From contig CBFFRP010000071.1 in NCBI GenBank assembly GCA_965644295.1, positions 124,001 to 188,000 on the forward strand: a DNA stretch of 64,000 nt, read 5' to 3'. Positions 1-21,250 of the stretch are shown here, one piece after another. A program made the translations under genes and the position numbers. Position 1 is the first letter of the stretch. Each line of letters opens with the position of its first letter. The stretch is from Paraphysomonas bandaiensis. Its lineage: Eukaryota; Protista; Chrysophyceae. The notes beneath the pieces are model-generated. The model saw only the letters and a program-made list of their open reading frames with translations, did no database searches and was not told where the DNA came from.

Positions 1-3000
1 GTACCACAACTTCTTGAAAGCCAAAAGACCATAAATCCGTTAAGAAGTGAGGCGGTAAAAAGGTTAAGAAGCAAGAGTACGCCAATCACATACCACATCA
101 CAAAATATAACCTTGAAGAAGTGCCGTTAGTCACTGATTCTATGCCTTCCGAGGTGATGTCCATGTTATTGACCATAAGGAGCGTAAAGAGTGTACCCAT
201 TGCAGATAAGATATCATTGAAATTTAAAACATAATAGTTCTTTTCACCGAAAGATGTTTCTGATAGTGTCGTATACGTACCATTACCGGATGCCTGAATG
301 AACCCACCAAATGCCTGCGGTGCGTAGTTACCAAAGAAAATCAACAATGTCACTAAGACTACTAACCTTAACTCCAACCCCAGCAAATACTAACCCAATG
401 GTCAGTAATAACAGCAGCAACAGAATAACATCCAGAGCACCTAGCATAATATAAACGCATAAAACAGTATTTTTAATGACTGCATACCGACTACGCAACG
501 ACGTATTCCAAATTTAAGAGCACGCCGATAGGGTCTCATAGAATCCAACAGAAAGATGTTGCGTGGAAACAAAATCACGCGAACAGCTGCAGCATATATA
601 AAAGTGGTGCGTGAAAAATCAACCAGGACCACTCCAGCCTGAGTAATGGTTACAATAATTCATGCACAACTGTGTAAAGTGTATACAAAGCACAATCTAA
701 TGCCGATACGCCAATATGATGATTGCATTACACATACCATGACAGTAGTTAGAGCCATGTCTTGAAAATATCTATAACTCGCCAGAAATCTAACGCCCAC
801 AGTGTGAAAGGGTGCGGCAAAAAACATCACATCATACCTTCTTATTCCCTTGGCCCACATTCTCAATATAGTTTCCAGTACACAAAACACAGTGATAACT
901 ACCGCTAGGGCAAAATCACATGCACCGCACACCGCAGCGAAACAGAGGCACGTCACAATGAAGTCATGTGAAAACTCAAATTCTTTGCAGTTAATCTGCG
1001 CACTTAGCCATTGTACAGAAGCAAATGCCGGCATTGCGAGCTGTCCTAAACCAGATTGCACGGAGTCCAAACGCGGTTTCGACTTCAGAAGATACTCATA
1101 TCGCGAGGCAAGCCATTGTAGGCGTATATCATTGTCGAAAAAAATGACAATATCGTTAGAATCCTGAGCGACTTGTGGCATGGAAACATCAGGAGAGTTT
1201 GACAAAACAACACTACCCCTGCCCGGAATTACAGATGGAAGTAGCATTGGGTGGTCATGAGAAAAACTCAGTAAGTCTTGAACATTTTCATTGTGATATG
1301 TATTGACATCAAACACACCTTCCGATATGCCCCGATTATCACCGGAGAAAGATACATCTGCTACATCTTCACAAATACTTTCGAGAACAGAACCCCTATC
1401 ATAGATAGATCGCATTTCAGGTGATGCATTCAATTCCATATCTATTGGTTTGCTACAACTGAGCACTGGAAGTGATTTAAGAAACTTGGCACAGTCCGTC
1501 TCAAGAACGACAGTAAGAAACAACTGGAAGAATAACTCACGTGGCATCCCAGAGTCGTAAATGTTCTTCACAGCATCAGACCGACGGTGTACAGCAGTCT
1601 TTCTCAAAGTAGATACAGAGGAGCGAATTCCAAAAGCATAACTGTACGAAGTCGCCATCGCTTCTCCGTGTAAACGAAGCAAAGGCTGAATATCCAACAG
1701 CGGTAGAGGAGAGGTGTATTCCTCAAACCAGTCGAAATTTGGACGAAATTTCTTCAATATCTTTGCCTTTGACCACGGGTCTTCATCCTGTTGTCTCATA
1801 TGTTCCTGTGTGTCTTCCATAGGCTTCGATTTGACTTTGGAAGGTGCAGAGTCTGCTGAAGAAGCTTGTGTAGGCCTATAATCTCGTTGTACGCGTAATG
1901 TCTCCAATTGAGCCGCTCTGTAGTGAATATTCATAACAGCCAAAAGTATGTCAGTATCTTCGTTGAACTCGGAATCTCTTGCCTCCAATCCACTTTCCGG
2001 TGGTCGTATGCCACGTATCCGAGAAAATTTACAGGTAATTTCACGTAGAAGATCTTTAAAATGCAACACCGGAATGGCTGAGTCTCGCTGCATTGAGGGA
2101 CATGTGTCAGGGTTCATGGACAGCATTTTCTCATAAGCGTTTGTAATATTCATAAGGGTACGTGTATGACAAGATATCCGGGAATTCCTTTGCATAGCCC
2201 TGAGAGAAGTTATTTCACAGAATACATTTGATAATAGTAAAACGAAACCTGAAGAATCCAAGCAAGAGGCCAGATATAACGTTGAGCATTCCCCAACTAG
2301 CAACCAGTAGGAATGCAAAGAAAAAGAAAAAAAGAAGTTTAGACTCCTAGAATATAAAGTTAGTGAGTTGTATGCTGGTCAGTACGTTGATGTGCGCATA
2401 AAGCATTACAAATTACAATTATACCTCGTATGACCACACAAAAGGATCGGGCCATGCAGCAGCATTCATAACTGTGAACATCGTCCACAAACCTTCAGCA
2501 TACGACTCAAAATACTTAGCACCCGTGTCAGACTTGGGATTGATGAGCATCATTGCAAGAGCCGTGTATACCACCAACAACCCACCCAGCAAAAGAATGA
2601 GATAAAGAAAACGTGGTATCGTACGAACAGCTATCTTCAGCATAGAAAAATACCTCTTCTCCAACAATAGTGCATATACGCATTCAAGAGGGAATATATT
2701 TAGCCATACTGACGAGCGGACAAATCTTGCTGCATCATCACCAGCAGCATTTACAGATACGAAAAGGAAATGAAGAAGTAATTCACACCATTTGAGGCCA
2801 TACAATACCAGCAATATGTGGAATACATATCGTCTGAACGTTCTAGTGCGGCCAGATTTCCAGTACCACTTTTTTCGATCTCGGTAAACTTTCCTACCCG
2901 CTGTAGCAGTCGAATTTACTTTCGAGTTTGATATATTTTCCCCTTCATCATCGTTGTTTTCCTCGTCTTCATTCTCTTCTTTTATCGTATGTTGACCGAA

Positions 3001-3701
3001 CCTGTGCGCAGACAATGTATCCCGACTGCTAACCCCATCTCCATCTAATGCGGGGCCAACTTGTGATAGATGTATACCCGAGCTAACCTCATCACTATCA
3101 AGTGAAACATTCTTTTCTCCACTATATTCGTAGCGAAATATCTCAACTATGGCATCCAAAACTAAACTGATACCAAGCACAACCATGACCAAAGCTTGGA
3201 TCCCAAGAATAATGTCATCATTGATGTAGCCCAGGTTCGAGACCTTGAATCTAAAAAGCTATCAAATTGAATTATGCGTCAGTTGTAAATGACTAAACCA
3301 CCTTTCCGAGTCATTCCAGTCGTGATATCTGAAAGTCCAGTTGGGTTTGCGAAATACTTCCAAAATAATCACGACCCATGCTGCAGCTCGAAACACAGAG
3401 TGATACTATAGTACAACTATGGTTAATACAATACAATGACATGAGATTATCCTCACCTGCTGTCGGTATGCATAGCAGTCCCTCTCAACAGTCGATTGAA
3501 ACGGCTCTTCAAAGAATTCACCTGTAAATAATGAGACGATTGAGACAGTTATGAGCGACAGATAAACCCAACCATCAATAGCGAGCTGCACTGATACAGC
3601 AGCACTCTCAAGAGGAGTCAGAGGAACACGCCCCTCCAGCCAGTCCTGAGAGAGACTCCCTTAATACACACACACATACAGTGTATGCGTTTACCTTCCA
3701 T
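1..3701 (-). CDS. Two-pore channel (TPC)-like cation channel, multi-exon, C-terminus beyond the left edge of the window
   Basis: N-terminal AAVSVQLAIDG resembles plant TPC1 AAALVDLAEDG. Pore 1 YFESYAEGLWTMFTVMNAAAWPD (ORF 2419-3192). Pore 2 translated by hand from about 20-315: NYYVLNFNDILSAMGTLFTLLMVNNMD...LYFVMWYVIGVLLLLNLFTA. Candidate ATG at 3701 splices in frame across a short GT-AG intron. Exon boundaries only partly resolved. Confidence 0.8.
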
Positions 3702-4134
3702 GATATATACGAGCTCATATGAAGACCACAGCCATGAGAACTATCTCGAATGATTGCACTGAGCTCACCTTCTAGTGGACTTGTGTGCTATGGATGATAT
3801 CTAGAGCCACTGGGCCTCATGGCCAACATACAGCACTATCCAAACCAACATACAAAACTGTGCTTTTATCAGGCATATATATAAAAACCCGGTATTTGTA
3901 AGTAGATTTTTTGAAAATATCGATTATTTACTGCATCTACAGTGGCAGATACAAACATATGTTGCTGCTCCATATGGTAAACGTACCTATGTACTGTACT
4001 GTACGTACATACATACAGACCAGCTGCTGATGTGTTGGTTGTGCGTGGGCTGCATATGGATACACTGGATATAAGCGCACAGGTGTCCACCGCGTAATTA
4101 GAGCACGATCTATCTCTAGCGGTGTCTATCTGTT

Positions 4135-7100
4135 ATGATGGACACGAAGGGAAGTATTGACGATAAGAATCTGTTGAATGCAGCGCATATTTCCTCCAGT
4201 GTGGACCCGCAGGAGGCAGGCGTCCCCATCGTATGGATGAAGCACTCCACAGTTAATCTCTATATCTATATCGTATTATCTGTTTTATCCGGTGGTCTTC
4301 TACACGTATTCTGTACAGTGCACCCCAAGTGGAAGGACTGGTGCCTTGCATCCCCGTGTGATGCTCCTGATGCCGACTCTGCTGTTGTCACTGTAGATGG
4401 CGTCAAAAATGTCGTGAAAGTCCAACATAATGATGTGGATGGGAAAAAGATTATATCTGTTGAAGCTGTTTGCAAAAGATACTGGGCATCGGCTACGGAT
4501 GGGTGGATACTTCGTCCAGTGGATGATGTACCAGCACATTTTTCTGATCTGGTGCAAGAGGCGCCCACATCGACTGAGAAAATTTCCAGAAAGATGTATT
4601 TTGCTTTGTACGGTCTCAATGTAATGGAGTTACCGAAGGCCTCGTTTTGGGACATATTAGCAGTTACTATATTTCATCCTTTCTATATATTCCAGTATTT
4701 CGCCGTAATAGTCTGGATGTTCGAGGACTATATTCTGTACGCCTGCGTTATTTTATTAATTACTGGCGGCGCAATTTACCTTACTACTTCGGAGACTGTG
4801 TTTAATCTTAGACGTCTTCACGACCTTGCAGGTATATCGTCTACTGTATCTGTTATTCTACCAAGTGGCGAAATTGTCGAAGTGTCCGATAAAGAGCTTG
4901 TGCCTGGCGATAGATTTATTATCAAGCAGGGTACAGCCATGCCTTGTGATGCTGTGCTTGTGTCAGGCCGTGTAAGCGTGGATGAGTCGATGTTAACTGG
5001 TGAGAGTGTACCTGTCAACAAGACACCTGTGGTTGAATCCGTCTTCTCCACCCGTAATCCGGATGGGTCACCAATGAGTAACCAGGCTGCACTTGGTAGA
5101 TATCCTGGACACGTTTTGTTCAGTGGCACCAAGGTACTACTCACGTCGAGTAGGGGAAGTGGAACAGAGGGGTCATCTGAGCAGTGTGTTGCCGTAGTTT
5201 ATCGTACTGGCTTTCGGTCGGCAAAAGGGCAGCTGATTGCTACACTTCTCAATCCAAAGGAGAACTTTTTGAGTTTCTTTTCTGATGCTCTGTGGGTAAT
5301 CCTCTTTATGGCTGTTTTGTGCACTGTGCTATATATATGGAGTGCAGTATATCTGAGGAAAAATAACGCAACGTGGGGAGATATCTGTTTAAAATACCTT
5401 GATGCGATCACGATAGCTGTTCCTCCTGCTCTAACAGCGAGTCTGACTGTGGCGACTGGCATATCCATTGACCGGTTACGGAAGAAGAATATCTTCGTTT
5501 CTGAGAGCACTCGGGTTAATTGGGCAGGCATTATCGGGGCAGTATGTTTTGATAAGACGGGGACACTCACAGAAGAGCGGCTTCACTTCAAGGGTGTGTC
5601 TGTTCCAGAGCACATTGCAGCAGCTGCAAACACCAGTGTCACCAGTCCTGATTCATGCTTTTCTGCCCAAAAAGCAGTGTCGTCAGTAGAGTTATCTCCT
5701 GACTCTGAGAATATCCCGCTGCCTTGTATGGAGCTTATGGCGACTTGCCATGCCCTTGCAGTGATAAACGGAACTCCTCTGGGTGACCCATTAGAAGTTG
5801 AATTGTTTCGGGCCTCAGGATATAGTTTACAGACGCCATCGACAGGGGAGGGAGAACATAGTTTGTCCGCACACCCACCAGGCCCACCGACCTCATCTAA
5901 TGGGTACAAGATTCTTCGTCACTTCGAGTTTACCTCGGATCGTTTACGTGCTGGATCTTTGGTGCAACGTCCGGAAGGAACATGTGTCTACTACTGCAAA
6001 GGGTCTCCCGAGATTATTATTAATCTAGTACGTCAGGAGACTGTCCCCCCTGATATTCATACGACTCTAAACTCATTGTCAAAGAGAGGTCTGAGAGTGC
6101 TTGCTCTCTGCTACAAGCTGGTTGCCAATCCATTACCAGGTGGGGTTGATGCCTTATCAGCACCTCAGAGTGCACTAGAAGAGGACATGGTATTTCTAGG
6201 TTTGGTCTTTCTGAGTAATGCGTTAAAGGCGGAAACAGTGTCCACAATCAGTGCACTCCGTAAAGCAGATATTAAGTGTAACATGATTACCGGTGATCAT
6301 ATATACACGGCCATTGCAATAGCAACTGACTGTGGGTTGCTAGTGCCTGGCCAAGATGTGAACATCATTGATGCTGAAGAGAGTTCACCGTCGGGTATAG
6401 CAATCACTAGCACACGTACCGAGGGTGTTGTGTCCACTAACCTCTTTGATTTCATGACTCATATTGACCGTCCGACAGATTCTCAAAATTCTACTAGCAC
6501 TCAGATAGCAGTCACGGGTCGGGGATTAGAGGTCGTGAAAACCCGACATGCGTATGTTCTTAAGATTCTTCTGGAGTGTACTCAAGTCTTCGCTCGTATG
6601 AAACCTTCAGATAAACAATATATTGTGGATGAGCTTCAGCGCATGACGGAGAAAGAGGTCCACCAGCATGTGCACGATTCTTCTATGGATGCGGGAGATA
6701 ATAATGTCCAAATATCGTCTGACAAAACTTCAACTCATGGATTACTCGGTGCATCAGGGACCACAATTATAGATAACGTGTCCACTGCAGTGAATATGAG
6801 TGACGATGGGCGCGGTAACCTCCATGTACTATTTTGTGGAGATGGTGCAAATGTATGTTGCTACAATCTGCTTTGTTTGTTGTGTGATAGTTGACTTTAA
6901 GGACATGGCCGCCCTTCGTGCTGCTACAGTAGGAGTGTCTCTTTGTGAAGCGGAGACTAGTGTAGCTGCCCCGATTACCTCCAGGCTGCAAACGCCAGGG
7001 TCTGTTGTGGATGTGATCAAAGAAGGAAGGTATGTACACTGTGCGTATTAATTTTTTTGTCAGACATATCACAGGTGCTCGTTAATTACCGCTTATGTTT

Positions 7101-7747
7101 TGGTGGCTTTCAACATAATGTATGGGACCATTCAGCTCTTTATGGCGGTAATGATGTATAACTATGGTTTGGAAGTTGGTGACAACACTTATCTTATCCA
7201 AGACCTATTTTATACTCTTGTTTTGGGGCTAGTTATTGCTGTTACTCCTCCTAGTGCAGAACTCAGCGAAGAACTCCCCCCGCAGCGCTTCTTCACGAAA
7301 TACTTTTGCTTCAAGCTGTTCTCTCAGATAATATGTTTCCCAATATTTCAGTTGATTGGCTTGCGTGCTTTGGCAGCTCAGTCCTGGTATCACAAGTACG
7401 ATTTTGGTGACGATCCTCTGACAGAAACCTACGCATACGAAACAAGTGTGATTGCGTCCCTCGGGTTGGCGCAGGTCATGATTGCATCTGTAGTCGCCAC
7501 CATTGATGAGCCCTTTAGAAAGATGTGGTACACCAATAAATACCACACCACTGCTCTACTCTTTCAAAGTGGGTTTCTGGCCTATCAAATATTTGGCAGG
7601 AAAAGCAAGTTCATGGAAGATGTTCTTGAGATACGACCTCTCCATCTTGACTTCTGTTGGATTCTAGTAGCAATAATCGCGCTGAATTGCGCTGTGTCAG
7701 GATTTTTATCATGGTGTGCAGACCTCATCAAGAAACATCTATCATAG
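4135..7747 (+). CDS. P5-type (P5B, ATP13A-like) P-type ATPase, 3 exons
   Basis: Motifs LTGES, PPAL, DKTGTLT, GDPLE, KGSPE, MITGD, FARM.P..K, CGDGAND. Introns 6853-6901 and 7030-7074 (GT-AG) join the ORF pieces in frame. C-terminal transmembrane helices in 7100-7747. Confidence 0.92.
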
Positions 7748-8071
7748 TGACAACTAATCACAGTGAAGATGTACACCAAATCCCAATTAGCAAATTTGTC
7801 TAATATCATGCCTAGCTGACGTAGCAGCACGTTGATATATTAGCTTTTGCAGTCATATGTACTTTGTCAAAGTTTTGTGTGCTACAAGCAGTTCATACTA
7901 GCTAATGCGTAACTAATACACCTTCTTTAGAGTATGTCAACCACCATATTGAGTAGTCGTTAGTCTAACACCTCTCACCTTCTTGTAGGATATGCGCCGT
8001 AAGGTTAGGATGAAAGGTAAAATAATAATCCAAAGTCTAATGATTTAAAATATACAACGCCCGTTCGATAC

Positions 8072-9300
8072 TGTTGAGTTCTGCAATATGATGTGATATA
8101 TATTGTGCAATTGAAGTGAGTTAACAGTGTGCAATTATAGGTAAAGTCAACTCATAGGTGTAACGGGTGATTATAGTAGTTACAAAGGAATTAAATTCAG
8201 TTACTGATGTGTGACTATACAAGATATAGAACTGACTGATGAACATATGATAAACAGATGTTGCTGGGAACAGATGTTTCAACATATGTTACACGAATAT
8301 GTAGTGAAGTGTTCAGAATAATAATTATAATTTCTTACTTGAAAGTGCATTGTGTTCAACAGCAAGGTTACGGTTTACGTGTAGAGCAAAGTTAACTTCA
8401 GTGAAATGTCCAAAGCTAACATGGTAGCGAGTGGTAGCTCTGATGAGGCGATGGAGGACAGCAAGGTGCTGAAGTTTGACAAGTGAAACGACACGTGTGT
8501 TGTAACGATTTGGGAGGCATGTGAACATGACGCAGATGTGTTGGAGGGTGCCGACCGATACATGGAGGCGACTACCACATGATGATCCCAATAAGGAGGT
8601 TTTGTCCAATCATATGCTTCAAACGCTGGTGGATAGGTCTAGGAGTGAGTTGGGAGTAGTACTCCAAAAGACTACAGCGAAATACCAGCTTGTAAATATT
8701 GGCCAATGATATGGACGAAATAGAGATTGATAGGCTGAAATGTATTTTCTACTAAAACTGCCTTCTACACTGAGCAGAGCAGCAGAGCAGTGCAGCTGTT
8801 CATAGTTAACGAGCAGAGAGTGCTGAACATATACATGAACAGAGACAGAGACAGAGTTCATCGGCGGAATGGTGCTAATATGAAGATGATGATGTCTCAT
8901 CTGGAGGGGAGTCCAATATGATAGAATCTGATGGTGAAGTGCTTATGACTGAAACAGTAGACCAACGAGTGTATCTAGACAGTTGTGCCGGAAAGCAGCT
9001 ATTCATTGTTGTTAAATATCATAGAGTGCTAGAGAAATATGAAGCAGAGCCAGGAGTCATATCTCTGACGAAGAAGGGGTCAGCAATGGAGACTCAAGGA
9101 GTAGGAAGCTTTCAACACTGGCAAAAGAGAAGGCATCAAAGTATGTGAAGATGCGGTGAAGAATATTGTCTCAGGCGGAATGCTGCGGGCACTGGTGTGT
9201 GGATTGGAACTACTTAGAATACCGAGAATTGTAGAGTTAAACACTGGTAGAGAGGTGCTGGCTGGAGACTATGATGAGAATGGAGGAATGCCATGGGAGG
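8072..9300 (+). mobile_element. Degenerate Ty1/copia-like LTR retrotransposon relic (candidate LTR 8072-8361, broken gag, protease remnant)
   Basis: TGTTGA...TCAACA termini bound about 290 bp. Downstream frames are interrupted by stops. 8918-9200 gives VYLDSCAGKQLF...METQGVG...VCEDAVKNIVSGGML, which resembles the copia protease pattern (LDSGAS...G.G...NLISVG.L). Confidence 0.5.
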
Positions 9301-9782
9301 CACTATATAATATTATGACGTTTTGAATTTGCCTATTATTACGTCATCATGCCATCATGTAATGGAGGAAAATGCCAAGGAGGACAGTAAAGTTAGTGGA
9401 TGTTGCCTTATGAGTGTGTTCCTGGGAGGAAAGGTGCCCGAGTTATCCTGGTTGAGAGGAAATGGGGGTGCAAGGCGTATGTATTAGTCATCATGTATCT
9501 GTCAATGTCATCATCATGAATATATACAATACTTTGATGTTAAAACTACACACTTGATGTGGTTTATAGTAAGAATTGACGTTAACATGTTCGTGTTGTA
9601 CACATGTGTCCTTATTAAAATAGTAGTCGAAGCATTAACATTAAAACAAGTCAAACAAGGCTAGCACTATGATATCAACAAAGAGCACAGTTATTATAGA
9701 GAATACTATAATACAATATACCAGTAATAGCAAGCATGGATCTGCACTGGATAGAGAAGATAACCAACACGGGTTTTTTATG

Positions 9783-9931
9783 CACTTAAGCACTTACAAC
9801 TCATCGTCTGAATGAATTTCGAAATCCTCAACAATGGATGATCAAAGTGAGTTGGTGGATGGCTGTATGGGGTCATCCATTGTTGAGGATTTCGAAATTC
9901 ATTCAGACGATGAGTTGTAAGTGCTTAAGTG
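9783..9931. repeat. Perfect 59-bp inverted repeat with 31-nt spacer
   Basis: 9783-9841 is the exact reverse complement of 9873-9931, checked base by base. Confidence 0.95.
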
Positions 9932-10374
9932 AAACGCATTCAAATAAGGATATGAAATTGATTTAGTGATGTAGCACTGTTATGAACACATTATTGAAAG
10001 GATTTATTAATTCACCTGAGTACGTTACACTCAACTCGGTACTGTCTTTCCAGACTCGACATTAACTGCACTCACTCGTCTCTCATAGCCTATGCCGAAT
10101 CCAGCAGAGTCTCAGTATCTGTCTTGGATTGCTTTCTCTTGGCTGGCATAGTACAGATATAGAGTGGAGTATGTATATTTGTGGTGTAGATATATATCGA
10201 CCAGGAAGCATGTCTGCAACGCCATATCCGACTTTGCACCTGGCCTGGTCTAGAAAATGCTGAACCAGGCCAAAAATTTCTTAGCTAGAATTGGATGAAA
10301 AAACTGTTGTTCCTACCGAGCTTTTTTTTGTATGGAAACCAATGGGAAGATACTGTGAACATAAGATGAGAGTT

Positions 10375-10585
10375 TGTATGTATGTATGCGTGTATGTATG
10401 TATGTATGTATGTATGTATGTATGTATGTATGTATGTATGTATGTATGTATGTATGTATGTATGTATGTATGTATGTATGTATGTATGTATGTATGTATG
10501 TATGTATGTATGTATGTATGTATGTATGTATGTATGTATGTATGTATGTATGTATGTATGTATGTATGTATGTATGTACGTATGT
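10375..10585 (+). repeat. (TATG)n microsatellite, about 50 units
   Basis: Direct reading. Ends about 330 bp upstream of the MetH ATG. Confidence 0.97.
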
Positions 10586-10912
10586 AGAGCAGCACTCAGT
10601 AGAATTTCTGTCTAATGGTACGGAACTAGTACTATTCTTACACGGTATCCAGTATTCTCGAAGCTATAGCAAAAAAACAAGATGGTCTCATTGTTCTGGT
10701 GCTCCTGCCTCATAAATCACACCCAATCAATTTATATTTCTATCATTTAATTAGTCGAGAATTCAAGTGGTCGAGAGGAGTGCTGTAATCCACAAGTTTT
10801 CGTTAGCCTTCTCCATCCTGCCTACACATGAGCTGATCTTCTCCTCATCCTGCGCATCAATCCACATATAGATGAGCTGTTACCGTTAGAGTACAGCTTA
10901 GTTATAATAAAT

Positions 10913-13900
10913 ATGTCTAAAAATAAGATACCCCGTAAGACTTTTGATTACGATGATGTCCCTGAGCGACCTGCTCTTGAGCCTCCTGCTCCCACCTCTG
11001 AGTATGCTCAAAAGAAGATCCCCTCCTCATACCAGGGTAGTGCAAGGACTCACCCGAATGTAGTCAAGGTTCGTAGTGGAAATTTGGATCCGATAGCCGC
11101 AAAGGCTCCTGGTTGGAGTGATCTGACAATAGATTGGGCCCAGCCTTCGAACATGTATCCGGAGAATTTCCCCTACTTTGTGCGTGGTCGTGATAGTTTG
11201 AGAGTTTATATTACAAAGCTGTTCAACACGGAGGTCACAATGTATGACGGTGCTATGGGGACAATGATTCAGAATGAGGGCAAATGGCTGGATGAGGCAG
11301 CGTACCGTGGTGAACGTTTCGCAGACTGGAGCTGCAACGTCAAAGGCAACAATGACCTTCTGTCACTAACACAGCCCCAAGTTATCAAGAAGATCCACAT
11401 GGAGTACCTAGAGAGTGGTTCTCGCTTGATCGGCACGAATACATTTAGCTCTACTCGCATTGCTCAAGCGGACTACAAGATGGAAGATCTTGTTTACGAA
11501 TTGAACTACAGTGGAGCTCGACTGGCTCGAGAGGCGTGTGATGAGATGACAGCCAAGTACCCTGATCGTCCCTGCTTTGTGGTTGGTGCTCTTGGTCCAA
11601 CGAATCGCACGGGTTCTATCTCTCCTAGTGTTGAGGACGCAGCATTCCGCAACGTGACTTTTGACGAGTTAGTTGAGTCGTACTACGAGCAGGCTGTTGG
11701 TTTATTGGATGGTGGTGCCGATATTCTTATGGTTGAGACTATATTTGATACTTTGAATGCCAAAGCGGCATTGTTTGCAATTGGGGAGTTATTGGAGGAG
11801 ATGGAGGTGGATATTCCAGTATTTGTCTCTGGTACCTTGGTGGACTTGAGTGGTCGTACACTATCGGGGCAGACCACAGAGGCATTCTATGCATCGATTC
11901 GTCATTCTAAGCCTATGTGTGTCGGGCTTAACTGTGCCCTTGGAGCCCAGCAGATGGTTCCTTTTGTGGAGCGTTTGGCTGCATGTGCTGAGTGCTTTGT
12001 TCACGTGTATTCGAATGCGGGTTTACCTAATGCAATGGCCGGCTATGACGACACCCCAGAAGACATGGCCCGATTCAACAGTGTATTTTTGGAGAAGCAG
12101 TGGTTGAATATGGTTGGAGGATGCTGTGGCTCGACTCCTCCTCATATTGCTGCTATTGCGGGTGTTATTAAAAACCAGGGCTTCAAACCGCGTCCTCTTC
12201 CTCCCATTCGCCGACCAAAGATGTGGTTGTCTGGATTGGAAGATCTTGTAGTGGAGGATTCCCACAACCATCTTGGCTTGCCTTTCCTAAATGTTGGTGA
12301 GCGATGCAACATATCTGGCTCTATCAAGTTCAAGAAGCTGATGATGGCCGGTAACTACGCGGAAGCAATGGATATTGCTAAGAAACAAGTCGTCGATGGA
12401 GCTAATGTTATTGATATCAACGTTGACGATGGTATGCTTGATGGGGTTGCGGCGATGCAGAAATTCGTCAAGATTGCTGTGACGGAGCCCGAGATCGGCA
12501 AGGTTCCTTTTATGTTGGATGCATCAAAGTTCGAGATTGTACTTGCCGGCTTGAAGTGGTGCCAGGGCAAATGCATTGTAAACAGCATATCGCTTAAGGT
12601 TGGCGAGGCCCTATTTATTGAGCAGGCCACGCTCCTGAAGAAGCATGGAGCTGCTGTTGTGGTGATGGCCTTTGACGAGGAAGGACAGGCTGCCACTGCA
12701 TCCGAGAAGATTCGCATTTGCAAGAGAAGTTATGATATTCTCGTCAATAAGGTTCACTTCCCACCTGAGGATATTATTTTCGATCCTAATGTATTGACGA
12801 TTGGCACTGGCATGGAGGAGCATTCCAATTACGGCGTTGATTTCATCGAGGCAACCAAGGTGATTAAAGCAGAGTGTCCCTACGCTAAAGTGAGTGGTGG
12901 AATTTCTAATCTATCTTTCGGGTTTCGAGGTGTCAATGTTGTTCGTGAGTCTATTCACTCGGTGTTTTTGTATCATGCCATTATTGAGGCTGGCATGGAT
13001 ATGGGAATTGTAAATTCTCACGAGATGATTCATTATGATGACATCGAACCTGATATGAAGCTCCTGTGCGAGAATTTGGTGTTTAACAAGACCCCAGATG
13101 CCACTGAGAAGATGTTGGAGCGCACAACCTGGGAAAAGGAGGCTGCTGCTGCCAGGAAAAAAGGTTTACCACTTCCGAAGAAACCTCGTGTGATAGTGAA
13201 GATTCCGCGCAAGACTTTTGATTACGATGATGCCCCTGAGCGACCTGCTCTTGAGCCTCCTGCTCCCACCTCTGAGTATGCTCAAAAGAAGATCCCCTCC
13301 TCATACCAGGGTAGTGCAAGGACTCACCCGAATGTAGTCAAGGTTCGTAGTGGAAATTTGGATCCGATAGCCGCAAAGGCTCCTGGTTGGAGTGATCTGA
13401 CAATAGATTGGGCCCAGCCTTCGAACATGTATCCGGAGAATTTCCCCTACTTTGTGCGTGGTCGTGATAGTTTGAGAGTTTATATTACAAAGCTGTTCAA
13501 CACGGAGGTCACAATGTATGACGGTGCTATGGGGACAATGATTCAGAATGAGGGCAAATGGCTGGATGAGGCAGCGTACCGTGGTGAACGTTTCGCAGAC
13601 TGGAGCTGCAACGTCAAAGGCAACAATGACCTTCTGTCACTAACACAGCCCCAAGTTATCAAGAAGATCCACATGGAGTACCTAGAGAGTGGTTCTCGCT
13701 TGATCGGCACGAATACATTTAGCTCTACTCGCATTGCTCAAGCGGACTACAAGATGGAAGATCTTGTTTACGAATTGAACTACAGTGGAGCTCGACTGGC
13801 TCGAGAGGCGTGTGATGAGATGACAGCCAAGTACCCTGATCGTCCCTGCTTTGTGGTTGGTGCTCTTGGTCCAACGAATCGCACGGGTTCTATCTCTCCT

Positions 13901-16900
13901 AGTGTTGAGGACGCAGCATTCCGCAACGTGACTTTTGACGAGTTAGTTGAGTCGTACTACGAGCAGGCTGTTGGTTTATTGGATGGTGGTGCCGATATTC
14001 TTATGGTTGAGACTATATTTGATACTTTGAATGCCAAAGCGGCATTGTTTGCAATTGGGGAGTTATTGGAGGAGATGGAGGTGGATATTCCAGTATTTGT
14101 CTCTGGTACCTTGGTGGACTTGAGTGGTCGTACACTATCGGGGCAGACCACAGAGGCATTCTATGCATCGATTCGTCATTCTAAGCCTATGTGTGTCGGG
14201 CTTAACTGTGCCCTTGGAGCCCAGCAGATGGTTCCTTTTGTGGAGCGTTTGGCTGCATGTGCTGAGTGCTTTGTTCACGTGTATTCGAATGCGGGTTTAC
14301 CTAATGCAATGGCCGGCTATGACGACACCCCAGAAGACATGGCCCGATTCAACAGTGTATTTTTGGAGAAGCAGTGGTTGAATATGGTTGGAGGATGCTG
14401 TGGCTCGACTCCTCCTCATATTGCTGCTATTGCGGGTGTTATTAAAAACCAGGGCTTCAAACCGCGTCCTCTTCCTCCCATTCGCCGACCAAAGATGTGG
14501 TTGTCTGGATTGGAAGATCTTGTAGTGGAGGATTCCCACAACCATCTTGGCTTGCCTTTCCTAAATGTTGGTGAGCGATGCAACATATCTGGCTCTATCA
14601 AGTTCAAGAAGCTGATGATGGCCGGTAACTACGCGGAAGCAATGGATATTGCTAAGAAACAAGTCGTCGATGGAGCTAATGTTATTGATATCAACGTTGA
14701 CGATGGTATGCTTGATGGGGTTGCGGCGATGCAGAAATTCGTCAAGATTGCTGTGACGGAGCCCGAGATCGGCAAGGTTCCTTTTATGTTGGATGCATCA
14801 AAGTTCGAGATTGTACTTGCCGGCTTGAAGTGGTGCCAGGGCAAATGCATTGTAAACAGCATATCGCTTAAGGTTGGCGAGGCCCTATTTATTGAGCAGG
14901 CCACGCTCCTGAAGAAGCATGGAGCTGCTGTTGTGGTGATGGCCTTTGACGAGGAAGGACAGGCTGCCACTGCATCCGAGAAGATTCGCATTTGCAAGAG
15001 AAGTTATGATATTCTCGTCAATAAGGTTCACTTCCCACCTGAGGATATTATTTTCGATCCTAATGTATTGACGATTGGCACTGGCATGGAGGAGCATTCC
15101 AATTACGGCGTTGATTTCATCGAGGCAACCAAGGTGATTAAAGCAGAGTGTCCCTACGCTAAAGTGAGTGGTGGAATTTCTAATCTATCTTTCGGGTTTC
15201 GAGGTGTCAATGTTGTTCGTGAGTCTATTCACTCGGTGTTTTTGTATCATGCCATTATTGAGGCTGGCATGGATATGGGAATTGTAAATTCTCACGAGAT
15301 GATTCATTATGATGACATCGAACCTGATATGAAGCTCCTGTGCGAGAATTTGGTGTTTAACAAGACCCCAGATGCCACTGAGAAGATGTTGGAGCGCACA
15401 ACCTGGGAAAAGGAGGCTGCTGCTGCCAGGAAAAAAGGTTTACCACTTCCGAAGAAACCTCGTGTGATAGTGAAGATTCCGCGCAAGACTTTTGATTACG
15501 ATGATGTCCCTGAGCGACCTGCTCTTGAGCCTCCTGCTCCCACCTCTGAGTATGCTCAAAAGAAGATCCCCTCCTCATACCAGGGTAGTGCAAGGACTCA
15601 CCCGAATGTAGTCAAGGTTCGTAGTGGAAATTTGGATCCGATAGCCGCAAAGGCTCCTGGTTGGAGTGATCTGACAATAGATTGGGCCCAGCCTTCGAAC
15701 ATGTATCCGGAGAATTTCCCCTACTTTGTGCGTGGTCGTGATAGTTTGAGAGTTTATATTACAAAGCTGTTCAACACGGAGGTCACAATGTATGACGGTG
15801 CTATGGGGACAATGATTCAGAATGAGGGCAAATGGCTGGATGAGGCAGCGTACCGTGGTGAACGTTTCGCAGACTGGAGCTGCAACGTCAAAGGCAACAA
15901 TGACCTTCTGTCACTAACACAGCCCCAAGTTATCAAGAAGATCCACATGGAGTACCTAGAGAGTGGTTCTCGCTTGATCGGCACGAATACATTTAGCTCT
16001 ACTCGCATTGCTCAAGCGGACTACAAGATGGAAGATCTTGTTTACGAATTGAACTACAGTGGAGCTCGACTGGCTCGAGAGGCGTGTGATGAGATGACAG
16101 CCAAGTACCCTGATCGTCCCTGCTTTGTGGTTGGTGCTCTTGGTCCAACGAATCGCACGGGTTCTATCTCTCCTAGTGTTGAGGACGCAGCATTCCGCAA
16201 CGTGACTTTTGACGAGTTAGTTGAGTCGTACTACGAGCAGGCTGTTGGTTTATTGGATGGTGGTGCCGATATTCTTATGGTTGAGACTATATTTGATACT
16301 TTGAATGCCAAAGCGGCATTGTTTGCAATTGGGGAGTTATTGGAGGAGATGGAGGTGGATATTCCAGTATTTGTCTCTGGTACCTTGGTGGACTTGAGTG
16401 GTCGTACACTATCGGGGCAGACCACAGAGGCATTCTATGCATCGATTCGTCATTCTAAGCCTATGTGTGTCGGGCTTAACTGTGCCCTTGGAGCCCAGCA
16501 GATGGTTCCTTTTGTGGAGCGTTTGGCTGCATGTGCTGAGTGCTTTGTTCACGTGTATTCGAATGCGGGTTTACCTAATGCAATGGCCGGCTATGACGAC
16601 ACCCCAGAAGACATGGCCCGATTCAACAGTGTATTTTTGGAGAAGCAGTGGTTGAATATGGTTGGAGGATGCTGTGGCTCGACTCCTCCTCATATTGCTG
16701 CTATTGCGGGTGTTATTAAAAACCAGGGCTTCAAACCGCGTCCTCTTCCTCCCATTCGCCGACCAAAGATGTGGTTGTCTGGATTGGAAGATCTTGTAGT
16801 GGAGGATTCCCACAACCATCTTGGCTTGCCTTTCCTAAATGTTGGTGAGCGATGCAACATATCTGGCTCTATCAAGTTCAAGAAGCTGATGATGGCCGGT

Positions 16901-19549
16901 AACTACGCGGAAGCAATGGATATTGCTAAGAAACAAGTCGTCGATGGAGCTAATGTTATTGATATCAACGTTGACGATGGTATGCTTGATGGGGTTGCGG
17001 CGATGCAGAAATTCGTCAAGATTGCTGTGACGGAGCCCGAGATCGGCAAGGTTCCTTTTATGTTGGATGCATCAAAGTTCGAGATTGTACTTGCCGGCTT
17101 GAAGTGGTGCCAGGGCAAATGCATTGTAAACAGCATATCGCTTAAGGTTGGCGAGGCCCTATTTATTGAGCAGGCCACGCTCCTGAAGAAGCATGGAGCT
17201 GCTGTTGTGGTGATGGCCTTTGACGAGGAAGGACAGGCTGCCACTGCATCCGAGAAGATTCGCATTTGCAAGAGAAGTTATGATATTCTCGTCAATAAGG
17301 TTCACTTCCCACCTGAGGATATTATTTTCGATCCTAATGTATTGACGATTGGCACTGGCATGGAGGAGCATTCCAATTACGGCGTTGATTTCATCGAGGC
17401 AACCAAGGTGATTAAAGCAGAGTGTCCCTACGCTAAAGTGAGTGGTGGAATTTCTAATCTATCTTTCGGGTTTCGAGGTGTCAATGTTGTTCGTGAGTCT
17501 ATTCACTCGGTGTTTTTGTATCATGCCATTATTGAGGCTGGCATGGATATGGGAATTGTAAATTCTCACGAGATGATTCATTATGATGACATCGAACCTG
17601 ATATGAAGCTCCTGTGCGAGAATTTGGTGTTTAACAAGACCCCAGATGCCACTGAGAAGATGTTGGAGCGCACAACCTGGGAGAAGAATCGAATGGAAAT
17701 GATCAAGAAAGGTATCAACCCCAATGGCGAGTGTGCTCCGAAGGCTGTTACTTGGAGAGATAAACCTGTGGTTGAGCGTCTGTCCCATGCTCTTATCAAT
17801 GGAATTACCCAGTATATTGAGGGTGATGTAGAAGAGGCTCGTCAACAAGCATCTAAACCACTTGAAGTTATTGAGGGTCCATTAATGAGTGGGATGAATA
17901 TTGTTGGAGATTTGTTTGGGTCTGGAAAGATGTTTTTGCCTCAAGTTATTAAGAGCGCGCGTGTGATGAAGAAAGCTGTAGCTTATTTGCTTCCTTTCAT
18001 GGAAGAAGAGAAACGAGCTAATATGATAGCTGAAGGAATTGATCCTGATAATTTGGATGAAGATGATACATCTAACTTTGCTGGTACTTTCCTCATTGCA
18101 ACAGTTAAAGGTGACGTTCATGACATTGGCAAAAATATTGTTGCTGTTGTTCTAGGATGCAATAACTACAAAGTGTATGATTTGGGCGTAATGGTTCCAT
18201 TCGAAACTATTCTTGATGAAGCAGCGCGCCTCAAAGTCGACGTAATTGGTCTGTCTGGTTTGATAACACCTTCTCTTGATGAAATGGTAACAGTAGCTAA
18301 GGAAATGAAGAAACGAAATATGACTCAGCCACTTCTCATTGGTGGGGCTACGACATCTAAAATGCACACAGCTGTGAAAATTGCTCCCAGTTATTCTAAC
18401 CAGCAGCATCCGGTTATTCACGTGCTTGATGCAAGTAGATCCGTCACTGTTGTCTCAAGCCTTTTAGGTGAGAATCGCGAGGAGTTTGTTGAAGGTATAC
18501 TAGAAGATTACGAAGAACTTCGTGATGACTACTATGATGGTCTCGAGAGTAGATCGTATCTGCCGTTTCAGAAGGCCATTGAAAAACGCAAGATTATTGA
18601 TTTCACGCAGTCGCCTCCTGCACCATGTCCTGCCCAGCTTGGTACTTTTGAGGTATCAATGTCAATTAGCGATGTACTGCCATTCATTGACTGGAATCCC
18701 TTTTTTCAAACGTGGGAACTACGAGGTCGTTACCCCAATAGAGGGTACCCTAAGATATTTAACGACGAGAAAGTCGGAACAGCTGCGAAAAATTTACACA
18801 ATGATGCGTTGGCGATGTTAGATACCATAATTAAGGACAAATCACTCGAGCTGAAAGGAGTTGTTGGTTTATATCCTGCTAACAGTGTCGACACCGAAGA
18901 TGTCGAGGTCTATTCAGATGAAACCAGATCAGAAGTTGTCGCAAAGTTTTGCATGCTTCGTCAGCAATCTGAAAAAGAGAATGACGATGCATATTTAAGT
19001 CAAGCTGATTTCATTGCTCCAAAAGATAGTGGTATTCCTGATTACTTGGGTATGTTTGCCGTGGCTTGCATGGGTGCCGACAAGTTGGTCGCGAAGTTCC
19101 ACGCAGACATGGATGACTACTCTAAAATTATGGTGGAAGCACTCGCTGACCGGTTGGTTGAAGCGTATGCCGAAGCTCTTCATAGAGAAATTCGAACTAA
19201 ACTTTGGGGATATGCAAAAGATGAAGATTTGAGTTCGGAAGATATGCTGAAGATAAAGTACCAAGGCATTCGACCTGCTCCTGGGTATCCCAGTCAGCCT
19301 GACCACACTGAAAAAGATACCATGTGGAAGTTGATGAATGTCGAAGAGAGAACGGGAATATCTCTGTCTGAGCACTACTCTATGATGCCAGCATCCTCCG
19401 TTTCAGCCCTTGTATTCGCACATTCCCAGAGCGAATACTTTGCTGTAGGACCTGTGACGAAAGATCAAGTTGAAAATTATGCTAGCAGGAAGGGATATGA
19501 CGTGGAAACTATGGAGCGTTGGTTGGGTTCTGTTCTCTCCTATCGATAA
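10913..19549 (+). CDS. METH: Cobalamin-dependent methionine synthase with triplicated Hcy-binding + pterin-binding modules, then single cap/B12-binding and AdoMet reactivation domains (2878 aa, no introns)
   Basis: Each of 3 copies has [27 protein letters not shown], the Zn ligands GLNC and GGCCG, VGERCN, DINVDDG and [12 protein letters not shown]. Present once only: [22 protein letters not shown] (DxHxxG), [23 protein letters not shown]. Confidence 0.97.
10937..17682 (+). repeat. Intragenic tandem triplication, period 2274 bp: cores 10937-13134, 13211-15408, 15485-17682; 76-bp linkers 13135-13210 and 15409-15484
   Basis: Identical antisense ORFs recur at +2274 and +4548 (e.g. 11269/13543/15817). 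The only core difference I noticed is T>C at 13233 (Val>Ala in copy 2). Confidence 0.97.
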
Positions 19550-20043
19550 ACTAATGTAGTTACTGAAATTGCGAACAGACTGTAGCGTAGTTGAATAAAA
19601 ACTGCTCTGCTGTGCGTTAGTTTAAAGCTGGCGTTGCTTGTTAGTCGTTTCTTGTATGCTGAATGAACCACAAGCACTGTTTAATATTTTTGCCTATGCA
19701 ACGATTCTGCTATATTATTTAACTAAAACAGATACCATATTATGTTTGTAGTCTGTCTTGAAATTAATGTGAAACGTACTAGTATTACATCTAATGCTCG
19801 TTAATGCGGATCTTGGAATACGTGTCTATCAAGTAGTTGAAGCACAAAGCTTCGTTTATTTGTTTTGTGTTGTACTTATGTATCGTGTCATAATATTGTA
19901 TCAATATATTGCACTTGAACTTACATATATTGAAAGTCTACTAAGTGTGAGTAGAAGTAAGTGTTACTACTATCGAAGGTTAGTTAATTTAAAAAATGGA
20001 ACAAACTAAGAAATTACTAAGGAACAGATGGTAAAAAATATTA

Positions 20044-21250
20044 CTAAGTAGAAACAAACGATACAGGAAGAAGTGCTAAATCAGCCGACGGAAATGTATT
20101 GGTTTCAGTGAGGTGGTCATGATTCCGTGAATTCTCCAGTTCGGCTGTTCGAGCTGCCACATGCTGCTGCTCGTTTAAAAAAATATCCATTCTCTTGCGG
20201 CGAATATTAGTAACGATTTGAATCATTTCATCCAGTGTATCTGGACAAGTAAGAGCATGCAACGTCTGATAAAAGGAATCAGGACTGCGGTCTTCCATGA
20301 TCGAATACTCTGCAGGATCGTCAGGCAAGGGAGTAAAATTTTCCTCCAGCTCCAGAGTGCAAGTAAAAATCCAGGATTGTCAGGCAAGGGATTTTTACTT
20401 GCGCTCTGCAGTATTTTCTGGATACAATGTATGGGAGTTCTATGAGCTCTACTGTACTGGGATTTATATCTGCTCAAGATTTGTCGTTAATTTGCAGCAA
20501 ACACATGCATGTGTATGTTGTACAACGTACAGCATGACAAGTGAAAGCAGTGATCTAAGTCAACTACTAACTACTACCACACTGGGACGCTTAAGACCAC
20601 ACATACATTTTGTGCAATTTGCATTTGGGACTGCCTTATGTGCCTCATGGCAACCAGGGGAAGCAGCAATATACCCTTCTAAGTTTGGTGATATGGTGGC
20701 CTTCCTTTAAGCTCGAAGGTATGTGGATGAAGGTCTTGCAAAAGGTGTTGATCTACTGTGATGAAGCGTCGGAATCGGCTCTTTTGCTGTCTTTTAGCCA
20801 GTAACAGAGAGAACACATGAAAGAGAGTGTATTGTTGGACACTAGTGGGATATATGCGGGTTCTCCGCCGGTGTATCCAGCAACAGGGAGTCGAGAGAGA
20901 GTGTGATGGTACAAGAGAGGGAATATCTGGAACGTCGCCAAGGTCGAGTACTCTGAAAGACCTATGCACGAGATAAGCATGATTGTAAGGAGAGTCACTG
21001 ATGTATGACTATATTTCTGAGAACAGATGTTCACCAGATGTTATATTATTATGTTGTGAAGCTATGTTTTGCGCAACAGAGGAAGGTTCTAGTTTACGCG
21101 AAGAGCAAGGTTAACGTCTGTACAATGTCCAATTCTAACAGACTCGGACGTCCTCAGCTGCCCTTGAACTTACAAGCGTTTGGCTCCACTTACCACCATT
21201 CAAAGAGTTTGAAGCATGGTTATAATTCAATATGTTGCAATAGTATTGTA
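20044..21250 (-). pseudogene. Fragmented coding-like remnant of unknown origin (possibly a decayed transposon ORF)
   Basis: Several short overlapping minus-strand ORFs broken by stops and frameshifts. Internal duplication of CCCTTGCCTGAC(A/G)ATCCTG. No recognisable motif. Confidence 0.25.

Follow-up and report, generated by a model that had tools for sequence, protein, structure and literature searches.

The 64,000 nucleotides of Paraphysomonas bandaiensis DNA analysed here (contig CBFFRP010000071.1; in the following, the window) carry at 10913..19549 on the forward strand a gene for cobalamin-dependent methionine synthase whose catalytic half is present three times. The most likely interpretation of our results is that this is a genuine, transcribed MetH/METH enzyme: Three copies of the catalytic half stand in one reading frame before a single half made up of the Cap, B12 and reactivation domains, all modules are competent, and the one B12 domain serves several of them. 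As a modular enzyme, MetH is the textbook case: One B12 domain travels between one homocysteine, one folate and one reactivation site. In the gene described here, the ratio of modules and domains is 3:3:1:1:1, and the canonical 1:1:1:1 stoichiometry of the family does not apply. Because the number of substrate halves per B12 domain departs from 1:1, the open reading frame is, judged by its sequence, a variant of the MetH/METH/MTR family (EC 2.1.1.13) rather than a canonical member.

The gene is a single open reading frame of 2878 amino acids that begins with ATG and is the only one of at least 150 amino acids within 9.0-21.5 kb; the calculated mass of the product is 318 kDa. Pfam detects S-methyl_trans in three stretches, Pterin_bind in three, and B12-binding_2, B12-binding and Met_synt_B12 once each, all far over the cut-offs, and the Met_synt_B12 profile is matched over positions 2-273 of 273. 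The order is N-extension, homocysteine (Hcy) barrel and pterin barrel, three times over, followed by the Cap, B12 and activation domains. This is the architecture that the original prediction, made from the sequence alone, had described, and its statements on the active sites are borne out as well: In the whole protein, the motifs GLNC, GGCCG and GERCN each occur three times, and the cobalamin motif DxHxxG..SxL..GG, which is characteristic of base-off/His-on binding, occurs once (GDVHDIG at amino acid 2400, followed by SGL and GG). The zinc (Zn) cysteine triad formed by GLNC and GGCCG is intact in all three modules when aligned with human MTR. Moreover, all three modules keep the pterin-barrel residues N557, D588, R605, D624 and N666 (unit columns), whose conservation in 66 single-module references is 97% or more. 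A repeat architecture of this kind is far beyond chance. Its parts, all on the forward (plus) strand, are the following:

10913..19549, plus strand: triple-module methionine synthase open reading frame, intronless, stop codon included (open reading frame listing, Pfam and motif count)
10913..13186, plus strand: module 1, amino acids 1-758, consisting of an N-extension of about 95 amino acids, the Hcy barrel, the pterin barrel and a C-terminal helix
11243-12163, plus strand: Hcy barrel of module 1
12296-13015, plus strand: pterin barrel of module 1
13135..13198, plus strand: linker between modules 1 and 2, junction-specific DNA
13187..15460, plus strand: module 2, amino acids 759-1516, core as in module 1, one Val-to-Ala difference at 13233
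15409..15472, plus strand: linker between modules 2 and 3, same sequence as the first linker
15461..17734, plus strand: module 3, amino acids 1517-2274, identical core, its end departing at 17683 into the genuine folate:Cap (Fol:Cap) linker
17771..17989, plus strand: Cap domain (B12-binding_2), one copy (Pfam)
18086..18367, plus strand: cobalamin-binding Rossmann domain, one copy, with GDVHDIG at about 18110-18130 (Pfam and motif)
18665..19495, plus strand: S-adenosylmethionine (AdoMet)/reactivation domain (Met_synt_B12), one copy and the only one in the genome (Pfam)
19742, plus strand: polyadenylation site (an RNA contig ends with a poly(A) run, and the RNA depth falls beyond)

The three units follow one another in frame with a period of exactly 2274 nucleotides (758 codons), and their 1911-nucleotide cores have 0 differences in any pair of copies. 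The edges differ: Copy 1 alone has three synonymous changes near its start (10930, 10933 and 10936), and copy 3 leaves the common sequence at the point where it enters the true Fol:Cap linker. The C at 13233 that underlies the Val-to-Ala difference is present solely in copy 2, and none of the runs compared shows it in its contigs, contigs being apt to drop minor variants. At both junctions, the same 64-nucleotide linker is found. Since this linker is not a simple join of unit end and unit start, the junction sequence is beyond what an assembler would invent. Its first part resembles the true Fol:Cap linker only distantly, and the inter-module linker was probably derived from the front part of that linker. 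As far as sequence comparison can tell, diverged edges around identical interiors are what gene conversion leaves behind in a duplication of long standing. The reading of the locus as tandem genes or as a fused gene model was discarded, as neither module 1 nor module 2 has its own B12 half, and the reading frame continues through the two junctions without a break.

Identical cores are also what one would expect if the genome held one unit that the assembler had expanded, and among the public runs no contig covers the array. Such an artefact is extremely improbable: The junction linker is unique sequence that recurs in runs of several studies, the unit is covered 2.6 times as deeply as the flanks in two DNA data sets, the edge-specific differences tell the copies apart, and relatives have the same design in independent assemblies. 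The depth data come from public runs kept as contigs; de Bruijn contigs break at repeat boundaries, so that their mean k-mer depth is informative. Run X1 was taken as DNA because its depth is even over the gene and the intergenic flank. In this run, a 136-nucleotide contig that joins the unit end, the linker and the unit start (15379-15514) has a depth of 151, the unit interior (15485-17682) has 239.5, the unique 3' part (17653-20019) has 92.8, and the flanking contigs have 88-95. This corresponds to a ratio of unit to linker to unique part of 2.58 : 1.63 : 1, and the unit depth minus the linker depth is about one genome equivalent, that is, about one flank depth, a requirement for any tandem array. 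In X6, a DNA run from a separate study and with a separate organism label, the unit has a depth of 82, and the unique part and flank have 27-37. Thus, the two expectations that had been attached to the original prediction held in the read data: Contigs of both DNA run X1 and RNA run X8 span the linker, and the depth over the repeat is a multiple of that over the unique part and not one third of the flanks. The X1 ratios fit three copies with a mild coverage bias and, equally well, a mixture of haplotypes with three and two copies.

The junctions are also transcribed. X8 is recognized as RNA by the poly(A) run after 19742 and the collapse of depth past this point, and its contig 15379-16680 runs from the end of the preceding unit across the linker into the next unit. 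In the poly(A) metatranscriptome X11, a contig starts at 15438 inside the linker and leads into the unit; here, the linker is reached from the downstream side only. Finally, the MMETSP transcript protein P0271 of the same organism (1387 amino acids) corresponds exactly to amino acids 1492-2878 (genomic 15386-19546), and its N-terminus consists of the preceding unit's end plus the linker. Since all three read the linker into the unit, the junction is transcribed in frame. In P0271, the modules were collapsed by short-read assembly, as it has 1387 amino acids compared to 2878 in the genome. The same collapse may lie behind single-module METH entries that stem from short-read transcriptomes of other protists. 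Just 3' of the gene, the region 19850-21050 has a k-mer depth of 1,500-17,000 in the DNA runs as compared to about 90 for single-copy sequence, with many loose contig ends; it is reminiscent of a dispersed element in very many copies, and its part 20650-21049 is very abundant in X8. On the 5' side, the stretch 10372-10590, about 320 nucleotides from the start codon, is a long (GTAT)n microsatellite with some 55 units.

The RNA data bear on the idea that the main product is shorter than the open reading frame, be it by internal transcription starts, by processing at the linkers as in a polyprotein, or because part of the population has only two copies, so that a one-module MetH would be made together with free Hcy-Fol halves. 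This idea draws on the X8 contig depth, which is no higher over the unit than over the unique 3' part, on the DNA k-mer ratios of 2.6 and 1.6, which fit a 3/2 mixture, and on the linker motif KKGLPxPRKPR, which is conserved beyond the need of a passive tether. We nevertheless consider it quite unlikely: In the RNA contigs and in the MMETSP transcript, the end of the preceding unit, the linker and the next unit follow one another, neither a protease site nor a promoter has been demonstrated, and in relatives with modules different enough for assembly (Mucochytrium P0036, P0044), two-module proteins derived from transcripts exist. Moreover, a steep 3' bias is evident in X11. RNA depth is contig depth here, and poly(A) libraries are 3'-biased; full-length molecules are not readable from contigs.

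The design is not limited to P. bandaiensis. A length-restricted search of public protein sets gave 324 MetH homologues among proteins of 1583-5036 amino acids, and the best 120 of these 324 were split with the module as BLAST query: Every one has 2, 3 or 4 modules. Pfam gave 3+3+1+1+1 or 2+2+1+1+1 for all four homologues to which it was applied. Among the best 120, stramenopiles (diatoms, thraustochytrids, pelagophytes), green algae and dinoflagellates are represented. Two modules are present in the closest relatives P0003-P0013 (74-84% identity), the diatoms Nitzschia and Epithemia, the thraustochytrids Hondaea and Mucochytrium, Mesostigma and many marine sequences. Three modules are found in Chrysophaeum and P0001, in the core green algae Chlamydomonas, Volvox, Chlorella, Dunaliella and Trebouxia, and in the dinoflagellates Polarella and Prorocentrum, and four are found in Bryopsis and Haematococcus. 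The loci of P0003 (L007) and P0001 (L008) are single intronless open reading frames, too, in independent assemblies. The closest named relatives are chrysophytes (Paraphysomonas vestita 83%, Epipyxis 80%). A library clustered at 50% identity holds mostly single-module bacterial representatives and fragments and is unsuited to a census of module number. In the protein of Mesostigma viride (P0104), an extra domain of about 90 amino acids precedes both modules (residues ~20-110 and 800-890); the precomputed Pfam list gives it as PF16561 (AMPK1_CBM, a carbohydrate-binding module).

The public multi-module METH proteins, among them those of Chrysophaeum taylorii (2877 amino acids) and Chlamydomonas reinhardtii (CHLRE_06g250902v5) and further entries from Volvox, Chlorella, Nitzschia inconspicua, Hondaea, Polarella, Bryopsis and Haematococcus, have the same (Hcy-pterin)n-Cap-B12-Act order with n = 2-4 and near-identical modules inside each protein. 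The stramenopile members have the linker of our gene, whereas the linkers of green algal and dinoflagellate METH are unlike it. The gene of P. bandaiensis differs from its closest relatives (P0003-P0013) in having n = 3 instead of n = 2, and its modules are the most fully homogenised among those compared, with 0 differences in 1911 nucleotides. All these sequences have already been deposited publicly with generic names. A full-text literature search, with most subscription journals outside its reach, yielded no account of METH with repeated Hcy-Fol modules, nor did papers tabulating METH Pfam domains across algae mention them. The architecture is seemingly undescribed, and it may have been described elsewhere.

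Three lines of evidence suggest that the modules within a protein evolve in concert. First, module identity is 84-100% inside one protein compared to 50-80% across species, and synonymous sites are saturated between species and yet unchanged between the modules of our gene. Second, a maximum-likelihood tree built from 81 modules places those of any one multi-module protein together (27 out of 27 proteins), and the number of label changes that it needs, 38, is as low as it can be. Third, the junction position and the linker motif ..ERTxWE+..A+KKGLPxP+KPR.. are common to P. bandaiensis, diatoms, thraustochytrids and pelagophytes, and the duplication is thus older than these stramenopile lineages. 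With modules sorting by species and a linker that the stramenopiles have in common, the repeats behave as expected of a concertedly evolving intragenic tandem repeat: They are more alike within than between species in spite of the older duplication. This pattern points to an old tandem duplication in which gene conversion or unequal crossing-over has probably maintained the uniformity of the unit interiors. In the nearest relative (L007), 27 of the 28 nucleotide differences between the two modules are in the last 230 nucleotides, a clustering that reads as a gene-conversion signature. Green algae have a common linker of about 68 amino acids, other than that of the stramenopiles, and dinoflagellates have their own common linker, distinct again; each of the three groups is its own clade in the module tree. 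The duplications in the three groups may go back to one ancient event or to three independent ones.

The extra modules might be passengers: An old in-frame duplication would persist, the B12 domain would cooperate with the last module alone, which has the Fol:Cap hinge, and copy number would drift neutrally. Upstream stop codons or frameshifts would kill the essential tail, and conversion would recopy a working module, so that such passengers would be retained. The variation of copy number between 2, 3 and 4 among close lineages would fit this idea, as would the homogenised module interiors, the presence of Linker II on the last module alone, and the loss of a Zn cysteine or the divergence of a few first modules (P0050, P0090, P0091 and P0097). 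The divergent cases are what makes it unlikely in our view: The three modules of L008 have escaped conversion, with synonymous divergence (dS) of 0.33-0.53, and still the ratio of non-synonymous to synonymous divergence (dN/dS) from module to module is 0.036-0.049. Of 260 modules, 254-260 retain the catalytic residues (all three Zn cysteines in 254, the five pterin-barrel residues in 258-260), and the design has been retained in three large eukaryote groups at a cost of about 760 amino acids per module. Where they have diverged, as in L008, the modules are under strong purifying selection, and the low dN/dS together with the conserved cysteines argues that the extra modules are selected. Lineage-specific substitutions are common to every module of a protein. 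In three green algal proteins (P0015_m1, P0056_m1 and P0068_m1), Leu or Met occupies the otherwise invariant Ser470 of the pterin-barrel GS motif in the first module only, which hints at the beginning of a specialisation of module 1 in some Chlamydomonadales.

How might such an enzyme work? Canonical MetH, as known from Escherichia coli MetH, Thermus tMS and human MTR (PDB 9ssp, 8ssc and 8g3h), has the same five domains in the same order, and shares with our protein the Zn-cysteine triad, the pterin-site residues, the DxHxxG..SxL..GG motif and a full-length activation domain. A one-module version consisting of module 3 and the tail aligns with its residues 95-1361 to residues 17-1262 of human MTR (9ssp). 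In contrast to the canonical enzyme, there are three Hcy-Fol halves to the one B12 domain, every module has a structured N-extension of about 95 amino acids that human MTR is without, and a dedicated linker joins the modules. Each upstream module has its counterpart in the isolated N-terminal fragment of MetH comprising the Hcy and Fol domains (Thermotoga maritima 1q7m, human 4ccz), the difference being that here the halves are covalently chained to a complete enzyme and not free. Goulding, Postigo and Matthews reportedly observed in 1997 that the Hcy+Fol fragment transfers methyl groups to and from exogenous cobalamin.

One unit is predicted by AlphaFold2 with a local confidence (predicted local distance difference test, pLDDT) of 93.7 and a predicted template modelling score (pTM) of 0.93; the N-extension is placed confidently (88-96) with the exception of residues 61-70, and a long helix (730-750) ends the unit. 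When the pterin barrel was modelled together with the linker, the N-extension and the next Hcy barrel, the pTM was 0.67, and the low-confidence stretch comprises just about 16 residues at the junction. In these models, the modules look like compact bodies on short, basic, proline-rich hinges rather than on long tethers. In published MetH structures, the Hcy-Fol pair is a rigid-body mover, Linker II, which joins Fol and Cap (Fol:Cap linker), is the hinge that guides the B12 domain to the Fol-on and Hcy-on states, and turnover is limited by conformational change and not by chemistry. By our preferred reading, Zn, homocysteine and methyl-folate would be bound by every one of the three modules, each of them a competent catalyst, and the single B12 domain, be it in cis or that of a partner chain, would dock on more than one of them. 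A larger number of loaded docking sites for each cobalamin would in this case cut down the conformational search, the turnover-limiting step, while copy number (2, 3 or 4) might drift through unequal crossing-over. This reading agrees with the idea put forward in the original prediction, and a mechanism of B12 economy by which turnover per cofactor would be increased is plausible.

In the 62.6 Mb of the genome (669 contigs), the only Met_synt_B12 domain is that of the triple-module gene, which is the only MetH of this marine protist, and no match to MetE (Meth_synt_2) was found in the genome. With a single MetH and MetE not found, the organism appears to be B12-dependent, which is in line with the earlier suggestion of a protist that needs the vitamin. 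Besides the three matches in MetH, S-methyl_trans is present only in two unrelated small stand-alone genes (G000:C238:162166-162930 and G000:C128:21468-22589), which are probably homocysteine S-methyltransferases. Methylmalonyl-CoA mutase, the other B12 enzyme, is encoded at G000:C115:102948-104963 in at least 7 exon pieces, and the 8.6-kb MetH open reading frame is intronless.

Several observations weigh against the view that three competent modules are served by one B12 domain in a full-length enzyme. The copy number rests on the assembly and on k-mer depth, because among the public runs no read or contig covers all three units. The depth in X8, an RNA run from culture, is about equal over the unit (~1170) and over the unique 3' part (~1205) and not 3:1, which a strong 3' bias or a mostly shorter transcript may explain. 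The predicted hinge between modules is short, with its ~16 low-confidence residues. Moreover, the true Fol:Cap hinge follows module 3 only, and since the guiding hinge reported for MetH adjoins this module alone, it is a supposition that the B12 domain also serves modules 1 and 2. Animals depend on B12 and manage with a single-module MetH. The multi-module design is also present in Chlamydomonas, which has METE besides METH. Thus, the design is not simply an adaptation to auxotrophy, as algae with METE have it and B12-dependent animals have one module. With these points taken together with the evidence above, a genuine MetH with repeated, competent modules is still the reading that we prefer. 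Going further, we suggest with considerable reservation that it is a selected design across algae and related protists: One cobalamin domain would cycle among two to four loaded modules and so raise the yield of methionine per scarce B12, conversion would keep the modules matched, and collapse in short-read assemblies would have hidden the design.

Natural MetH enzymes with two to four substrate halves per cofactor offer a way to ask whether conformational search or chemistry limits turnover, and whether the B12 domain can serve barrels to which it has no direct hinge. As Chlamydomonas has the design, it is genetically testable there. These questions concern both B12 enzymologists and phytoplankton biologists. 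B12 is limiting for many phytoplankton, and the true length of METH is under-reported by short-read transcriptomes and some gene models. If it is true that these organisms trade protein mass for cofactor economy, this would change the reading of B12 quotas and of METH transcript and protein counts.

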